This document shows, piece after piece, positions 986 through 9,232 of a stretch of 64,000 nt of DNA (positions within the stretch are counted from its first letter, which is position 1; each line of letters starts with the position of its first letter). The position numbers and the translations under genes are program-made. The stretch is from positions 7,006,001-7,070,000 of the forward strand of contig OU015566.1 of the NCBI GenBank assembly GCA_907165135.1, read 5' to 3'. Source of the stretch: Oikopleura dioica (taxonomy: Eukaryota > Animalia > Chordata). Below the pieces are notes generated by a model, which saw nothing but the letters and a program-made list of their open reading frames with translations, did no database searches and was not told where the DNA came from.

Positions 986-2140
986 GAAAAATTCTTTGAG
1001 AAAACATGCTTAGCAAATTCTTCTTTCAAAAATATATACTAGAAAATCCCAAAAGAACGCATTTGAAATCAGGTAACCTATTAAAAATTTATGATGTGGT
1101 CATATTTTCAAATAAAAATAAATGATTCCAAGATGAAGATCAGTCTTTAGGACGAGAATAATGCTCAAAAACATAAAAACAGTGCCTATCAGAATGGAAA
1201 AATCTCTGGTCGATGGAGATTTGAGTGCTTATTTAGGACTTTTCCTCCTTGATTCCACGAAAGTTTCAACACTTCCTTAGAATGGAAGCCAGTTCTTGTG
1301 AAATGAAAATATCTAGGAACGCTCAAACTCACTGGATCTTTGACTGAAAGACCTTGTATTCTACAAACCTCTGAGATTGTAGCGATGGCCGGAAATACTC
1401 TCATTCTGCTTTGCTGTTTCAGAATCGTCAAAGGCGTTTGTCAAAAGCCCTCGCGACTTGGAAAAACTATTTGGTATGTTGACTGGCTGGGACATAAAAA
1501 ATAATGACTGGGAGAAATATTTTTTGCCAGCGCGAATTTATCGAAAATTTGAAAAACAAAATGCTCAATCGTGCCCTCTCTAAAACGATGCATACAATCT
1601 CAGAGAGGCACGAAAGAGCAGATAACGAGGTCACAGCAGGTTCGACCTCGTGGTCGAAAAATATTTTCAAGCTGATTGAAGGGACTTTTGAGCTTCAAGT
1701 GGGCGGGGAAATTTAGATATGTTTTATTTTGTTTACAGTGAAAACTTAATTTATTTGCCTATTGTAAAAATCAAGCCGACTTGAAGTGAAAAGAAGCCGT
1801 TTTAATTTCACTTCTAGATGTATCATCAAAATACTTCACTTCAAGATTCATATTTTTCATGAGTTTATGTGCCAGACTGGTTTAGTTATCAAATCTGTGT
1901 GAACGAGTCTTTCAAAAAAGATATAATGCTTTTTGCATTTTTATTTTTTTCAGAGTGAATAGAGAATGAATCATCAATGGGGTTGCGCCAGTGGGAAAAT
2001 CGACTTTTTTTGCACTTGACCTGGAGGGATGAAATTTTGTGGACATATTTCTGAGGTCCTAATCAAGAAAAAAATCAAAAAAAAAATTCGAAAAATTAAG
2101 GGTATAGGGGTCATACTATGGTAGGCGCTCCAGAGCACAA

Positions 2141-3550
2141 GTCTCGAAAGAGACAATACAAAGATATCAGAAGGAGGACCCTGCTTTGTCGGGATTAATC
2201 CTTGCTGCCGAGAGAACAAATGGCCACGTTCTTGATAAAGGCAGTCGATATCGTCTGAAAGAGGACCTGCTGGTCCAGATAACAAAAGCTGGAAAGGAGC
2301 TCGTGGTGATACCGAAATCGCTGGGTCGGGACATCGTCCGTTACCTACACGTCGTTTCGGCTCACAGTGGAAGAAATGAAATGTTATCAGTATTAGATAG
2401 AGAGGACATTCTTATCAAGGGACGAGAGAGACTCGTCCGGGAAACAACACGCGAATGTTTGCTCTGTCACTTGACATCAAATCGATACAGATCCAGCGAA
2501 ATGAAGATGGTGATGAAACCGAACCTAAGTGGACCGTACCGGAAAGTATTTATTGATCTAGTTACGTTCCAAATTGAAACGCAAAATCGCGAACACGCTG
2601 TCAATTGTCTCACGATGGTTGACGATTTCTCATGCCGCCTTACTTATCGCTTTGTTCGAAATAAAACTGCTGCTGTCATATCAAAACGCCTACTTGAACT
2701 CACCTGCGAAGTCGGTGGACTTGGCCAGATGGAAGTCTTTAGCGACAATGGACTTGAATTCGTCGCCTCCAAGACTCAAGATCTTCTAGAATACCTTCAA
2801 ATGCACGCCGGACAGATCTCACCAACAAACGCTAGAGCCAATAAAGTCGAGCGCTGCCATAAATCTATTCGCGATAATCTACGAGCCATCGCCCTTACGG
2901 AATCAAACGCTCAGCACAAACTCGATCTTGCTGTTTCAACATATAATCATCAGGTGAAGTCAAGCCTCGACATGATGACTCCCATGGAAGTTCTTGGTAT
3001 TAAACCTCCAAGATACTTTTCTGCTTATCTCCAACACCGCCAAAACGAACCAAAATGCGATTCTATTCGAGAATTCACTCAAAATATCAATATTCTCTTC
3101 AAAAATCTATCTGCATTCAAGCTCAACCGATATCTCTTCAAATCGGAAGACTCAGCACCGCTACTTTCGGAAGGCGATATTGTTGTCTTGAAAGAAAACA
3201 GCCTCAGAAAACATGATCCTGGTCTTTCTGGACCATATGTGATCACGAACACACGTTCAAACAATTGCCACGATATCGAAAATCTATTCACCAGCCAGAA
3301 GCTGATGCGAAATGGCCGTTTTCTGAGAAAGGTTCATCTCAGCGAGGAAGATAAGAAAAATCTGACGTCAAAGAATTTGTTCATCAGAAAATCCGGACAT
3401 ATTCTCTTCGACGATAACGAAATCGATCTCGCGAAAAGTTCACTTGAGCAAGAACCCGAATTTCTTCTTCAACCCCAGGAAAGTAAAACTAAACCAAAAC
3501 CCAAATCCGATTCCAAAGTAGAAAGCTCTTACAATCTGCGCAAAAGATGA
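2141..3550 (+). CDS. pol: Pol C-terminal part: gypsy-type integrase
   Basis: Frame is open from the 2139 junction (ETIQRYQKEDPAL linker motif). HHCC finger LHVVSAHSG...ECLLC; D-D-E core FIDLV / FSDNG / KVERCH; GPY motif GPYVIT; no internal stops. Confidence 0.93.
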   Translation, partial: VSKETIQRYQKEDPALSGLILAAERTNGHVLDKGSRYRLKEDLLVQITKAGKELVVIPKSLGRDIVRYLHVVSAHSGRNEMLSVLDREDILIKGRERLVRETTRECLLCHLTSNRYRSSEMKMVMKPNLSGPYRKVFIDLVTFQIETQNREHAVNCLTMVDDFSCRLTYRFVRNKTAAVISKRLLELTCEVGGLGQMEVFSDNGLEFVASKTQDLLEYLQMHAGQISPTNARANKVERCHKSIRDNLRAIALTESNAQHKLDLAVSTYNHQVKSSLDMMTPMEVLGIKPPRYFSAYLQHRQNEPKCDSIREFTQNINILFKNLSAFKLNRYLFKSEDSAPLLSEGDIVVLKENSLRKHDPGLSGPYVITNTRSNNCHDIENLFTSQKLMRNGRFLRKVHLSEEDKKNLTSKNLFIRKSGHILFDDNEIDLAKSSLEQEPEFLLQPQESKTKPKPKSDSKVESSYNLRKR

Positions 3551-5253
3551 TCATTTTCTTCATCTTTCAACTAGCTCTAGCCAAACGATTTTTTATGATC
3601 GACTCCGGAAAGGCAGCATTCCTTGTCAAGTCCAAAATCGATAAAAACCTGCAACTGTCTTTGGACATCCCCGCCTTCAACTGGACCTATATCGATAATC
3701 CCTGCTTCAACAATCACTCAACTAAAGCTTATGCTCGCAACGGCACGCACCAGCTCTTCAATGAAATCGAAAATTGGATCAACGAAAATTTCAAAGAACA
3801 AGAATCCCATCGTCATCGCCGATTTATCGGTGACCCATTCCGTATCAACTTCTCATGGCCGTCACGCAAATCTCAAACTAAGGCCGCACTTGAAATTCTC
3901 AACAAGAAATCAACAACAAACGCGAAAGAAACTGTCGACCTGGTCAACATTGTCAACAAGGACTTGCTGGAGATTCAATCAGAAGTTATCAACGACGAAA
4001 CGAACTTTGAAAATTTTGTTGCTCAACTTTGCGATTTTGACGCAAAAATCTCTGCCTTGGTTATGAAACTTATCAACTCACTTCTGTTCGATGAATTTAA
4101 ATCAACAATCACTGGAATTTCCCACGTCGTCATCAAATCTGACTTGCAAAATCTTCTCTCAAGCCTTTGCTCGTTCGATTACGATGAACTTTACACAAAT
4201 TGCGCAAATATCATCAGTTCCTACCCGCTCCGCATAAAGAACATAAACTCTGAAATCTACGAAGACAAGATGATACTACAAATCAACGCCACAGCTAAAA
4301 TTCCGTCATTTGAAAAACTAGGAAATGCCACTCACATTCTGGAAGGACCGAAACCAATCAGCATTCAAGAAGACACCTTCATCTACGAAAAACTCATCCT
4401 TCCGCACACAATTGCGATTTCAAGCTCAACTTCAACTTCACTCGATCTCTGCGAGGACATTCACGACGCTTATATCTGCTCGTATGGACAAGTCAACAAT
4501 TTCAAACTCAACAAATGTGCTACTGATTTGGCAAACAACAATTCAACAAAGAACTGCGAAACAACTCTCATCAAAAGCGACAAGGATTGCCTATTCTCTC
4601 AGTTTCAACGTTACATCATGATAAGTCATTTTAATCAAATAGGTATTTCTTATTTTGACCGACGACACAAAAAACATTTCACCAACTTTACACATTCTGA
4701 TGGAAACTTCGTCTACCAGCTGACTAATAAACCAACGACACTTCACTGCACAAACGACATCTTCTACGCTCATTATGAAGAGACGCTAAATCACGTTCAA
4801 CTTCACACAACAAACACACTCGACCATTTTGACCTCATCAGTCAAGATGATTACCGCAACTCTCAAAATGTCCTCCAACACAAACGCGCAAATATCTCGA
4901 CAGCGGAATACAATGACATCGCGAACAAACTCACGGAGAATGAAACCTTTGGAAACAAAATCATCTCACACTACAAAACAAACTGGATATCGACTTTAAT
5001 GACGACCCTTCACACAATTGCTTCGATCATCATACTCCTGATAATTTTCAGAATCACAATCGCCTTTGCTCCACTACTTCGACAATTTTTAAATTTCATC
5101 TCATCAACAATAGCCTACGGATTGTCACGCCTTCTTCCCAAACTTCTCTTACTTCGCAAAGCTCAAACCGACGATAAAATCAACATGGACGATGCTTCAA
5201 GCCCGCCAACTCCTGAGAACCTCAAGGATCTCCCATTCTCGACTAACGCTTGA
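3547..5253 (+). CDS. env: Envelope-like glycoprotein of the retrotransposon (568 aa)
   Basis: ATG overlaps the pol stop (ATGA). Hydrophobic signal peptide MIIFFIFQLALA, furin-like site RHRR|FIG, Cys-rich ectodomain with NxS/T sequons, C-terminal TM segment (IASIIILLIIFRITIAFAPLL) and short tail. Confidence 0.88.
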   Translation: MIIFFIFQLALAKRFFMIDSGKAAFLVKSKIDKNLQLSLDIPAFNWTYIDNPCFNNHSTKAYARNGTHQLFNEIENWINENFKEQESHRHRRFIGDPFRINFSWPSRKSQTKAALEILNKKSTTNAKETVDLVNIVNKDLLEIQSEVINDETNFENFVAQLCDFDAKISALVMKLINSLLFDEFKSTITGISHVVIKSDLQNLLSSLCSFDYDELYTNCANIISSYPLRIKNINSEIYEDKMILQINATAKIPSFEKLGNATHILEGPKPISIQEDTFIYEKLILPHTIAISSSTSTSLDLCEDIHDAYICSYGQVNNFKLNKCATDLANNNSTKNCETTLIKSDKDCLFSQFQRYIMISHFNQIGISYFDRRHKKHFTNFTHSDGNFVYQLTNKPTTLHCTNDIFYAHYEETLNHVQLHTTNTLDHFDLISQDDYRNSQNVLQHKRANISTAEYNDIANKLTENETFGNKIISHYKTNWISTLMTTLHTIASIIILLIIFRITIAFAPLLRQFLNFISSTIAYGLSRLLPKLLLLRKAQTDDKINMDDASSPPTPENLKDLPFSTNA

Positions 5254-5564
5254 GTCGACTTTGCTCTCATCAACAATTCAAAATCCAAAAACAAAACAAA
5301 AAAAAATTCTCAAAATTCAACAAAAAATTCAAAAGAAAAATATTCAAAAGAAAGAAAAGACAAAAAAATACTCAAAACAAATGAAAATCAAAAAAATATT
5401 AACTAACTCCCTTTCTGTACCATAATGAACAATTCGCACTTTCTTTACTGTTCACTTCCAAACAAACTCTTTACTGCACTAACACGAGTTCACGATTCAT
5501 TTATTCCATCAAACCCGATAAACACTGAAACAGTTAGGACAAGTCTCAAGCTCCGCTGGGAAGG

Positions 5565-5879
5565 TGGAGAAGCATTCGTTGCACAAAGCCGAAGCGAGAC
5601 TCGACACGTTCAACCGGACTTGCTGTGCCGACTCCTGGACTCGATCTGATTCACATACAAACCGACCGTCTATTTACAAGATAAGATAATTTCGACACAC
5701 TTATTACCTGATCGTAGTCTCACCCGTATTGTCTCATTTGAACCTCTCTCTCGCATCCTCCTCATGATATCTCCCAACTTATCGAGCAAGATTCTCAAAT
5801 TCTCGAACATTCTCTGAACTAAAAGCAAAAGTTAGACGTTATTTGTAAGCACTTGGGCCGATAACTCACTTATGCTACA
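5565..5879 (+). repeat. 3' LTR of the Tor-like element (about 315 bp)
   Basis: Starts TGGAG right after the PPT and ends CTACA, followed by an abrupt switch to AT-rich DNA. No 5' LTR survives for comparison. Confidence 0.6.
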
Positions 5880-6134
5880 TTAAATAATAACATAATGAAT
5901 ATGAAAATTTTTAAAATGAAAATACTACATCTATGCAAAATTTAGAATCCCTCCGAATTTCTTATATCCTATAAAATGAATAAACAAAATTTCGATGATT
6001 ACCTAGACAAGCCCCGTCAGTAGGACTTGATTATGATTAAAAATGATTTTATTTGAAATAAAAATTCAAAAATTAAAAATGACTCTTGATTTAAAAAATC
6101 AACGATAGGTATCAGAAATCAGGATATATATAAT

Positions 6135-7346
6135 TTATTTACAGGTGCGTAGAGAACATTCACTAGAAATCAGAGTTCGAGCATTTGCATCATGCTCATC
6201 AAATAAGCGCGTACCAAAGTCAGTTAGGGCCTCATGTCGCATCTCAGTAAATTTCAGATTAGTAAGTTCAGTGAAGCCAGCGGGAAGGGATTCGTTATTA
6301 GTATACATATTCACATAATATTCGAATGTAAAATAATCTATGAGCTTGCAGCATTTAGGAAAACCCATATACCCTTCCATTAGATAATCATCGACAAATT
6401 GACCTCTAGTCTTACAGCTAAGGTCGAGGCCGGAGTCTTTGAGAATCCTGAGAACCTCCCCACGGTCAAGCAAGAGAAGTGGTAACTGATACTGTAAATG
6501 TTTGATTTTTTCGTAAAAGATAGGGTCATCAAAAAGTACATTCGCATAGGACCTAATAAAAGTTTTAATTCGCCCTCCGTATTTCGAAAAAGTTCTATCA
6601 GAACAGGTCTCCCAGACATAACATATTCGCCTTCGTTTGTTAATAAAACTCTCGGAATTTTGCCGGGCGCCACCGCTTTAGAGAAATTTTCATGAATAAT
6701 TCAATTCAAATTTATAGTATAAAACGTTCAAAATTTTCAGAAAATAAGGCTTAATAATACATTCTTATTTATTTAGATATAAATTATACTACTATTTCAA
6801 TATTAATTCCTTCCTAAAACTTCATATTCTTGTCGGTCGGGATCCGCTCGTTCTTGATATCGATTTTCGAGGGACTTGCCTTGAGCAGTTCGAACCAGCT
6901 ACAATTAAAAAATAGAATCTATAGTTTTAGTATGATCAGAAACTCTAGACAATATGTGTCTTGTGCGTTCGCACCAAGAGCTCTTCTCATGATCATCCGT
7001 CCGGCAGGCAGGATGCTAGGCAATCAGGCCGTTTTTAGTATTTAATTATGTTAGTTTTTTTGTTAATACCGTTCTTTGTTTAAATTCCTCGATTTCCATT
7101 CGCCTTTAAAAATAATTATTTATTCATTTTACAGTCATTTTTACATAGGGACGATGTCGTGACTTTCTCCCAAGGGCCCCGCTTCACTCGCGACGAGAGT
7201 TGATACAGTGCTAGAATTAAATTTAGAAAATAGGCTTCAATCATTAACAAAATTGAATTTAGAAATAACTGACCATATATTTATAAATAAGATAATAATT
7301 TTTACCTTTCCGCATAGTTTATTTTGATCCTCTTACGAAGATTCAT
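6135..7346 (-). CDS. Five-exon orphan gene, 265 aa, inside the LTR-like element
   Basis: Exons 7346-7306, 7210-7145, 7015-6944, 6898-6821 and 6675-6135. All four introns are GT-AG and phase 2, and splicing gives one uninterrupted ORF (MNLRKRIKINYAESTVSTLV...ICYVWETCSDRTF...GFPKCCKLIDYFTFEYY...RTCK*). The last exon alone is a 180-codon open frame. Confidence 0.75.
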
Positions 7347-7915
7347 TTTGTTATCCCTCTTAAATAAATTCTCTTTAAGTAAATACATTAATCTCTAATA
7401 AATTATAATTACAGAATAAAAAATTTATTCCAAAACAGTTTAAAACTGCCCTCTCTCTTTCTCTCTCTCTCTCTCTTTCCGCGCGTATTCCTTATCAGCC
7501 GGCGCGGCGTTCTCACCAACTACTGCAGACCCCCGATTCTTATTTTCCCACGACCCCCCATTCTCTCCACGCGCGCGCGGGCTTATCACTTTTCACCTCC
7601 AAATTCTCTCCTTTCGGCGCGCGCTCTCGTCTCCGCCGTTTTCCTCCTTTTTTGCTCCCTTATCAGTATATTTTCATTTTCATTTTTTTCATTTTCCATT
7701 TTCAATTTTCTCGCTCGTTCAAATTTCAAAGTACTGAAATTTCGACACGAAACACTAGTAGCACCTAAGTACACTGTTCCAAATTTATTATTCCTTGAAA
7801 ATCTTTATTCTTATTATTATATACAGAAGAAAGAAGAAACTGTTCATTTACTTTATTTTACTCTCACTCTTCCTTGATTTCAACTGCAAATAAAATTTTC
7901 TGAACAAGGGGGGAG

Positions 7916-8036
7916 TACTATGGTAGGCGCTCCAGAGCACGAGAGCGCGTCCTCAAAAAGGGACGTCTCTCGGGCCCAGGGCGCAGTCAGCCCGCACTCT
8001 CCCCGACAGTCAGACAGCCCGTCCGAGCCAGTTGTA
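7916..8036 (+). repeat. Putative 121-bp 3' terminal repeat (LTR) of the inner element
   Basis: Lies between the PPT (7906-7915) and the GGTCA duplication (8037-8041). GC-rich; its first 25 bp are identical to 2114-2138. Confidence 0.55.
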
Positions 8037-8308
8037 GGTCAAAAAATCGATTTTTTTATTTTTGCCAAATTAAGCCTGATTAAACCTAGACGATCATTTA
8101 AAAAGCTCAAAAATGTTTTTTTCGAGCCGAAAAAAGTCAAGGGAAGATAAAAAATCCGCAAAAAAAAAGAAATTTAAATTTTAAAGAATTTCAATAAGAA
8201 CCATAATTAGGCGAAGAGCTCGAATAATTTGTATTTTCACCCCGTATGGGTGTGGGTGGGGTTGGGGAAATAACTGAGATTGATCACCTCAGAGTTCAAC
8301 GCCGATCT

Positions 8309-8800
8309 CAAGCCCCTTAAATTTAATAATCAAGGAACGGGGCTGAGACGGCCCGAAGGGCCGTCAAGCCCCTTAAATTTAATAATCAAGGAACGGGGCT
8401 GAGACGGCCCGAAGGGCCGTCAAGCCCCTTAAATTTAATAATCAAGGAACGGGGCTGAGACGGCCCGAAGGGCCGTCAAGCCCTTAAATTTAATAATCAA
8501 GGAACGGGGCTGAGACGGCCCGAAGGGCCGTCAAGCCCCTTAAATTTAATAATCAAGGAACGAGGCTGAGACGGCCCGAAGGGCCGTCAAGCCCTTAAAT
8601 TTAATAATCAAGGAACGGGGCTGAGACGGCCCGAAGGGCCGTCAAGCCCCTTAAATTTAATAATCAAGGAACGGGGCTGAGACGGCCCGAAGGGCCGTCA
8701 AGCCCCTTAAATTTAATAATCAAGGAACGGGGCTGAGACGGCCCGAAGGGCCGTCAAGCCCCTTAAATTTAATAATCAAGGAACGGGGCTGAGACGGCCT
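8309..8800. repeat. Tandem array of 55-56-bp units, each with a GAA-triloop hairpin (8 full copies plus 1 partial)
   Basis: Unit CCCCTTAAATTTAATAATCAAGGAACGGGGCTGAGACGGCCCGAAGGGCCGTCAAG, nearly invariant. GACGGCCC-GAA-GGGCCGTC forms a perfect 8-bp stem. Confidence 0.97.
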
Positions 8801-9232
8801 GGGTCTGACCTGAGTCAGGTTATTGGGTCAACGTGAAATAAAAGTAATTAATTTTAATTATTTATCGAGAATTTTCGAAAAAATCGCTAAATCGGAAATT
8901 TTCGTTGCATTGCTATTTTTTCAAGCGCACACGAGCGCATAGATATTGTGCCTGATTATTGTAGCTTAGGGTCTAAACTTACAAAAAAAATATGAATTAC
9001 GCCTCAGGCACCTTCACCCGGGGGTCAAAATCGCTAAAATGTGCCAAAAAAGCGGATTTTTTTCGAAAAAAATGCGAATTACCAAAAAAAAAATCGAAAA
9101 TTTTTATTTTTTCATTTTTATCGTAAAGCCCTTTAATTTTTATATATTGTCACGTGGTTTGAGCCTGATCTATAAACAGGCTATTTCTGGCCAATTTTCC
9201 ACTAGCGCAACCCCATTCATCAATCATATAAG

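Follow-up and report, generated by a model that had tools for sequence, protein, structure and literature searches.

A deleted Tor-like retroelement of Oikopleura dioica and the putative backward gene cassette behind its env gene

What kind of mobile element carries an open reading frame backwards between short terminal repeats, and is that frame a passenger, a part of the element or no gene at all? The question is raised by a 64,000-nucleotide stretch of the Oikopleura dioica genome (assembly GCA_907165135.1, contig OU015566.1, positions 7,006,001 to 7,070,000 of the forward strand), hereafter called the window, in which an element occupies positions 2114-8036. All coordinates given without a chromosome are window positions, and the genome searched is the 64-Mb assembly. 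An earlier note, made from the letters of the window, had read this element as a possible retroelement of the TRIM/LARD kind (terminal-repeat retrotransposons in miniature and large retrotransposon derivatives) that moves an intact, five-exon orphan gene in antisense orientation. The explanation favoured here, and considered probable as a whole, is different: the element would belong to a Tor family of low copy number that bears env, would be a 5.9-kb copy with an internal deletion, and would carry a backward accessory cassette in a region behind env that is constant in the family. The part of interest is the lineage-specific backward cassette; it is set on two known kinds, namely Tor elements and the antisense extra open reading frames (ORFs) carried by retrotransposons with long terminal repeats (LTRs).

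The insertion, its family and its Tor identity

The element has interrupted a DNA transposon, of which at least 27 copies exist in the genome. At least eight other copies of this host are uninterrupted at the insertion point, where they read ...GGTATAGG|GGTC(G)AAAAATCG..., the right side of the junction being also recorded as GGTC(G)AAAAATCGATTTTTT. These empty sites set the limits of the insertion at exactly 2114 and 8036, reveal its target duplication of 5 bp and demonstrate that 7916-8036 is not a part of the host transposon, a possibility that had been left for verification. The signs on which the earlier note was built were all found in the sequence: positions 2114-2138 are an exact 25-nt match to 7916-7940, the polypurine tract (PPT) AAGGGGGGAG directly adjoins 7916 on its left, both outer flanks carry GGTCA, and the right-hand unit 7916-8036 has TAC...GTA ends. 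The locus is thus a single retroelement insertion into a DNA-transposon copy, and the claim of a non-autonomous retroelement with short terminal repeats, PPT and 5-bp duplication holds for the window copy. The supposed 121-bp terminal repeat fares less evenly, as the right unit is a real LTR but the left copy has only 25 nt.

Related copies place this insertion in a small family. The 121-bp unit has relatives at five other places in the genome, and the first 15 nt of the LTR occur seven times in all. The most complete relative, copy A (C4:6542301-6554371, about 12 kb), is bounded by two 127-bp LTRs that are identical at 127 of 127 positions, and this pairing, together with the recurrence of the unit in the genome, establishes the 121-bp unit as a real LTR. 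Copy A encodes protease, reverse transcriptase, RNase H, integrase and env, followed by the same post-env region as in the window; with this full coding capacity it shows the full element to be of an autonomous type, not a TRIM or a LARD. From its position 7003 onward it is about 97.7% identical to the window copy. One base past its 5′ LTR begins TGGTGACGAAT (TGG...), a candidate primer-binding site (PBS); in a search for the primer tRNA, the exact genomic 13-mer matches of this candidate did not fall at tRNA genes. Inside copy A, a segment of about 1.46 kb that corresponds to window 2327-3784 and covers most of integrase and the beginning of env is duplicated in tandem, and on its 5′ side about 17 extra bases precede the LTR, among them a near-copy of LTR nt 1-11. 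Another insertion, independent of the first and flanked by a duplication of its own, GATGA, is copy B (C4:7913321-7914292, 972 bp). It begins with 15 nt of the LTR and 9 unassigned nt, which are followed by the last 950 bp of the element, from the position equivalent to window 7104 through the 3′ LTR. Copies C (on C3, 83% identical) and D (77%) are older 3′ fragments, and the PPT is present in all family copies examined. Other copies with paired terminal repeats and distinct duplications, as the earlier note had anticipated, are therefore represented by the identical LTRs of copy A and the GATGA of copy B. Copy A, the window copy and copy B, the three with paired ends, lie on the same chromosome (C4, 6.54-7.91 Mb), in the same orientation and within 1.4 Mb.

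The family can be identified from its plus-strand genes, which the earlier note had overlooked: two long ORFs, integrase and env, fill positions 2186-5253 of the window copy. The integrase matches the annotated O. dioica protein g1710, and the 568-aa Env-like protein is 99% identical to g1711 of chr1 of O. dioica OKI2018_I69. The latter starts with a signal-like N-terminus and carries RHRR at residues 89-92, with F-I-G directly behind it at 93-95; it further contains 10 N-glycosylation sequons, 10 cysteines and, at about 480-515, a C-terminal transmembrane segment. The Env proteins of Tor elements are furin-cleaved transmembrane glycoproteins with an F-X-G motif (PMC4402516). In the ORFs of copy A, Pfam domains follow one another in the order RVP/Asp protease, RVT_1, RT_RNaseH, Integrase_H2C2 and rve. 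Features of Ty3/gypsy Tor elements found here are paired LTRs (in copy A), a 4-5 bp target duplication, the order protease, reverse transcriptase, RNase H and integrase (PR-RT-RH-IN), and an Env with a furin-type site and F-X-G. Given the integrase domains, the Pol order and LTRs of copy A, the matches to annotated O. dioica proteins and the Env features, the insertion is almost certainly a deletion derivative of a Tor (Ty3/gypsy) element, its relation to other Tor elements being expressed in pairwise identities. The window copy is devoid of PBS, gag, protease and reverse transcriptase and therefore cannot move again.

Comparison with the described Tor3a, Tor3b and Tor4b elements (Volff et al. 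2004; Henriet et al. 2015, PMC4402516) refines this placement. The host species and the PR-RT-RH-IN order are shared, as is a third gene for a transmembrane glycoprotein with a furin-type site and F-X-G. Duplications of 4-5 bp, a low copy number and young insertions are likewise shared, as would be regulatory sequences inside the element (PMC4402516). In contrast to the described classes, the LTRs of the window family measure only 121-127 bp, the N-[L/V]-G motif is absent from its 568-aa Env-like protein according to a motif check, and its RH-IN region is 31-35% identical to the nearest relatives (31% to the Pol of Bergen O. dioica). Within the present genome, pairwise Pol identity to other elements is 32-36%, and the window Env shares 20-25% identity with the env products of other Tor elements. 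A further difference is the 2.66-kb post-env region with its backward ORF cassette, which is not mentioned in PMC4402516.

The backward cassette behind env

The 2,662 bp that separate env from the PPT do not occur in the genome outside the family. The window copy and copy A have them in full, at about 99% identity outside one variable segment, and copy B keeps the last 812 bp. This region contains a minus-strand frame of 180 codons (6677-6138). Stop codons have a frequency of 6.2% there, at which chance would yield about 0.05 such frames, so that the frame stands beyond chance. An antisense ORF between pol/env and the 3′ LTR, as in elements of the aORF-3R type, is accordingly present with 180 codons in the window and 188 in copy A. 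Codon usage was scored with a crude model, for which 38 long open frames elsewhere in the window served as the training set. The 3′ 140 codons of the backward frame reach +0.17 bits per codon, to be compared with +0.14 for env and +0.12 for integrase, and off-frames score negative. Genome-wide, the last 112 aa are encoded only in two element copies, and the cassette is therefore not a host gene residing at another locus. The idea that the unit travels with the element is supported, since it is found in both copies that span the region, partly in a third and nowhere else in the genome; the reverse idea, of a single-copy host gene at a fixed locus elsewhere, finds no counterpart outside the family copies. 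That the cassette is cargo specific to this family is thus very likely, and the large backward ORF is probably a real coding sequence.

The composition of the unit had been correctly noted earlier: the upstream block (7431-7660) reaches 54% GC and the 3′ flank of the backward unit has 23%. The upstream block further holds three CTTATCA motifs (TGATAAG, GATA-type, on the minus strand) within 175 bp, a motif with only about 20 sites in the 64 kb when both strands are counted. Copies A and B retain each of these sites, although they lie in the most diverged segment of the element, and the block 7431-7665 could be a promoter or an enhancer. With respect to this divergence, window 7480-7700 differs from copies A and B by 5.6% substitutions and several indels, to be set against 0.4-1% elsewhere, which could reflect fast evolution or recombination between subtypes.

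Putting these features together, the post-env region would be a constant part of this Tor lineage, and the cassette would consist of the GC-rich block with three GATA-type sites, the orphan ORF and a stop codon overlapping a poly(A) signal. Such a cassette may act as an accessory transcription unit under its own internal promoter and would be copied passively inside the genomic RNA; any introns it contains would survive, being antisense to that RNA.

Whether introns exist is a separate issue. The five-exon minus-strand model (upstream exons in Table 1, last exon 6675-6135) is open in the window copy, with GT-AG introns, and its modelled 265-aa product is predicted to be soluble, with an isoelectric point of 8.3 and a basic N-terminus (MNLRKRIK...). 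The proposed exons contain 43% GC and the introns 21%. The window copy and copy A differ at 12 places within 6135-7346, three among 798 exon bases and nine among 414 intron bases (Fisher p = 0.0045; p = 0.05 when substitutions alone are counted), and the four upstream exons (257 bases) are free of differences.

Several observations weigh against the favoured explanation, either as a whole or in its spliced form. Four RNA runs (three oligo-dT bulk and one single-cell) gave no reads on 2100-8060, yet these runs had no control stretch and may come from other O. dioica lineages, which differ strongly from one another, so that the zero is no test of expression. An exhaustive HMMER search with the last exon among 1.84 billion representative proteins found no homologue, the sole match, to a bacterial repeat adhesin, being a chance result of six weak repeat matches summed. 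Two ESM Atlas searches with the backward frame returned nothing usable, a metagenome scan for the ORF returned nothing confirmed, and AlphaFold2 models from single sequences of the frames of both copies are unusable, with a predicted local distance difference test score (pLDDT) of 33-36. Pfam contains no family recognizable in the frame, and exact-product look-ups gave no match. As regards the element itself, no clean target duplication was found in the flanks of copy A.

On the side of gene structure, when the upstream 745 bases were shuffled within 30-nt blocks and the large exon was kept fixed, 65% of 60 shuffles still yielded an ATG-to-stop GT-AG chain of at least 265 aa; the openness of the five-exon chain is therefore no evidence. 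A one-base length difference in the A-run at 6557 puts copy A out of frame under this model, and hence the window copy and copy A are not both intact under it. The frame of copy A, which uses another phase upstream of 6557, is weakly favoured by codon usage over 6558-6677 (+0.22 versus -0.01 bits per codon, 39 codons) and does not connect with the proposed upstream exons. A variant of the chain starting at a second ATG, meant to join the frame of copy A, was rejected for stops in exons 3-4. The intron bias of the differences could itself come from A/T homopolymers that are prone to indels or mis-assembled. Thus, of the intact five-exon gene described earlier, openness in the window and GT-AG borders stand, but the chain does not exceed chance and copy A does not share its frame. 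Splicing of the unit as a multi-exon gene is best taken as a possibility of somewhat less than even weight.

The alternatives part over how much of the region is coding. It is conceivable, if rather unlikely, that the post-env region is non-coding altogether, a long 3′ untranslated or regulatory region in which GC-rich blocks serve as internal enhancers of a tissue-specific transcription of the element itself and the backward frame is a relic or an accident. Clustered GATA-type sites conserved amid diverging surroundings would fit this, as would the further GC-rich blocks at 5530-5800 outside any gene model, a backward frame with neither RNA, homologue nor confident fold, an exon chain within the range of chance and copies that use different frames upstream of 6557. 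Chance, however, would then have to account for an open frame of 180-188 codons in both copies at the prevailing stop frequency, for coding-like usage in the right frame and for a stop overlapping AATAAA. Another alternative is a simpler gene of one or two exons, which would start at an ATG inside the large frame or use an 80-nt intron (6571-6492) with a GA donor and an AG acceptor. This intron leaves the frame open in both copies and takes in the differences at 6557 and 6495, so that one synonymous exon difference remains, and GA donors are documented in Oikopleura, the Tor3a env mRNA included (PMC4402516). The uninterrupted frame of copy A, with 161 codons from the internal ATG, points the same way, as does the codon preference at 6558-6677, although that test comprises 39 codons only. 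Such a gene would nevertheless place the GC-rich block 800-1000 nt upstream of its start codon, across AT-rich sequence, and the proposed upstream exons are without inter-copy differences and mildly coding-like in usage; it is judged unlikely.

Two further alternatives concern the origin of the cassette and the nature of the element. A recently transduced host piece, or a foreign element nested in reverse orientation, would explain why the cassette has promoter-like and poly(A)-like signals of its own, and an AT-rich inverted repeat (5897-5924 and 7669-7696; 28 nt, 82% complementary) does bracket it. Still, this repeat is of low complexity, is one of 47 such pairs in 12 kb and is probably due to chance; the 64-Mb genome has no other copy of the cassette, whether compared as DNA or as protein, and public sets, which include annotated O. 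dioica proteins, have no similar protein, so that a source of this kind is improbable. The initial proposal, a dedicated TRIM/LARD-like element that moves a spliced host-type gene, drew on short terminal repeats, PPT and target duplication, and the cassette is indeed found in every copy spanning the region. Elements of the TRIM and LARD kinds have both LTRs in full, together with PBS and PPT, and lack coding capacity. The window copy resembles them in being non-autonomous with short terminal repeats but has a 25-nt 5′ stub, no PBS and ORFs for integrase and env that make up half of the element; moreover, the same cassette is found in a 12-kb relative with full coding capacity, and copy B has lost most of it. 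This identity had to be abandoned and is now highly improbable. The deleted Tor copy with a backward accessory cassette consequently stays the preferred explanation, and its features are collected in Table 1.

Table 1. Features of the insertion at 2114-8036 and its borders, in window coordinates
Feature	Position	Strand	Basis or remark
Left target-site duplication, GGTCA	2109-2113		Single GGTC(G) in uninterrupted host-transposon copies
5′ LTR stub, LTR nt 1-25 only, no PBS behind	2114-2138	+	Identical to 7916-7940
pol remnant	2139-3550	+	Aligns to copy A from A position 7003, at 97.6%
Integrase ORF, 454 aa	2186-3550	+	Pfam rve (1.7e-09), weaker H2C2 zinc-finger matches; counterpart O. dioica g1710
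env-like gene, 568 aa, ATG overlapping pol stop	3547-5253	+	99% identical to annotated g1711
Post-env spacer: A-rich 5260-5400, GC-richer 5530-5650 and 5710-5800, then AT-rich 3′ flank	5254-6134		Only in family copies
Large open frame of backward cassette, 180 codons	6135-6677	-	TAA stop overlaps AATAAA
Proposed upstream exons 7346-7306, 7210-7145, 7015-6944 and 6898-6821 with AT-rich introns (putative model)	6678-7346	-	Open chain
GC-rich block, three CTTATCA (TGATAAG on minus) at 7491, 7582 and 7659	7431-7665	-	GC content, motif count
PPT AAGGGGGGAG	7906-7915	+	Directly before LTR in window copy, copy A and copy B
3′ LTR, 121 bp, TAC...GTA ends	7916-8036	+	Related copies elsewhere in genome; hairpin 7940-7972
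Right target-site duplication, GGTCA	8037-8041		Same empty-site comparison

Two small ORFs lie in the GC-richer blocks between env and the cassette, one of 74 aa at 5425-5649 (+) and one of 52 aa at 5670-5828 (-); they could be further small accessory ORFs or chance. The host DNA transposon ends in 33-nt terminal inverted repeats at 1966-1998 and 9195-9227 and contains, at 8258-8881, about 11 copies of a 56-bp tandem repeat, with a similar array on C3.

Origin of the deleted copies

How an insertion with normal ends came to lose most of its 5′ LTR can be approached through its left junction, where LTR nt 1-25 are joined to mid-pol with a microhomology of at most 1 base. The 5′ stub of copy B, about 24 nt long (15 LTR nt and 9 unassigned), is of nearly the same length as the 25 nt of the window copy, and a hairpin is predicted at LTR nt 25-57 (DNA-fold z-scores of -2.7 and -3.0). 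The deleted form may therefore have been born in reverse transcription. Plus-strand DNA would start at the PPT and copy the LTR from nt 1, the nascent strand would stall at the hairpin that starts at LTR nt 25 and would then switch to an internal minus-strand site, and the product would be a linear DNA with both integrase-recognized ends intact. The intact target duplications fit such a linear DNA with both normal ends. This template switch is put forward tentatively, as a possible origin of the deleted copies, and a later deletion in each of the two copies, ending at the same place in the LTR, is a less economical alternative. Splicing was also considered for the 5′ junction and rejected, as an intron at this place would read GA...GA and lack an AG acceptor. 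The two independent stubs of about 24-25 nt at the foot of the hairpin point to a specific failure of plus-strand synthesis that would leave copies dead on arrival, a failure mode that is, to our knowledge, rarely documented for LTR elements.

Possible accessory genes in Tor and counterparts in other elements

Does the cassette have counterparts in other Tor elements of the same genome? The nearest other Tor elements, whose integrases are about 26-37% identical in local comparison, were compared over ten 3′ regions. Distant env homologues are present in these regions, and none of the ten contains a homologue of the backward ORF. A second Tor family, with two copies that are 99.6% identical over 5.97 kb (L034, C1:5449800-5458300, and L042, C4:5089900-5098400), has behind its env a GC-rich repeat block, a backward frame of 201 codons, in which Pfam recognizes no family, and a forward ORF of 173 codons. 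Post-env accessory ORFs of this sort are therefore not unique to the window element. Another backward ORF, near a different Tor element, was set aside, as its product is a RING-finger protein and it may belong to the host and lie outside the element.

Beyond Oikopleura, the HBZ gene of human T-cell leukaemia virus type 1 (HTLV-1) is a spliced antisense accessory gene of a complex retrovirus, with a start in the 3′ LTR and a bZIP product. The window cassette would resemble it as an accessory gene that runs antisense, may be spliced and lies in the 3′ part of a retroelement with env; it differs in that its putative promoter is internal to the element and its product has no recognizable domain. 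In engineered reporters of the his3AI/neoAI type, an intron antisense to the element RNA is not removed before reverse transcription. The same antisense-intron logic would apply to the window cassette, whose introns and direction of transcription are predicted from sequence. LTR retrotransposons of plants, namely Grande (gene23), RIRE2, Retand and PvRetro13, also have extra ORFs in antisense orientation, placed between pol and the 3′ LTR; these ORFs are orphans of unknown function found in most copies of a family, and that of Grande has its own upstream promoter (PMC7264820, where the HTLV antisense promoter is also cited). Position, orientation, orphan product and retention in most copies of the family are thus shared with the plant elements. 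In contrast, introns are not mentioned for the latter in PMC7264820, and the window cassette, a putative gene, sits behind env in an element of a chordate. For Tor, PMC4402516 makes no mention of post-env or antisense genes, and none was found in the literature for Oikopleura. The statement that no described element has such an organization is thus to be narrowed: Tor elements (PMC4402516) and plant antisense ORFs (PMC7264820) have both been described, but no description of such a cassette was found for Tor.

Among the retrovirus-like elements of this very compact chordate genome, Tor elements are the main group, and published accounts of them are confined to gag, pol and env. A backward gene cassette specific to one lineage, if true, would place Tor among the complex retroelements. 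In its general form this idea, which is held to be less likely than not, is that Tor elements are 'complex' retroelements whose lineages each carry their own orphan post-env accessory genes, some of them backward, with a GATA-type promoter and introns that survive reverse transcription; if true, it would be without precedent among the LTR elements of animals. If the cassette is expressed, it would offer a natural test of antisense introns riding through retrotransposition and would be a candidate for regulating how active the element is near the germline.

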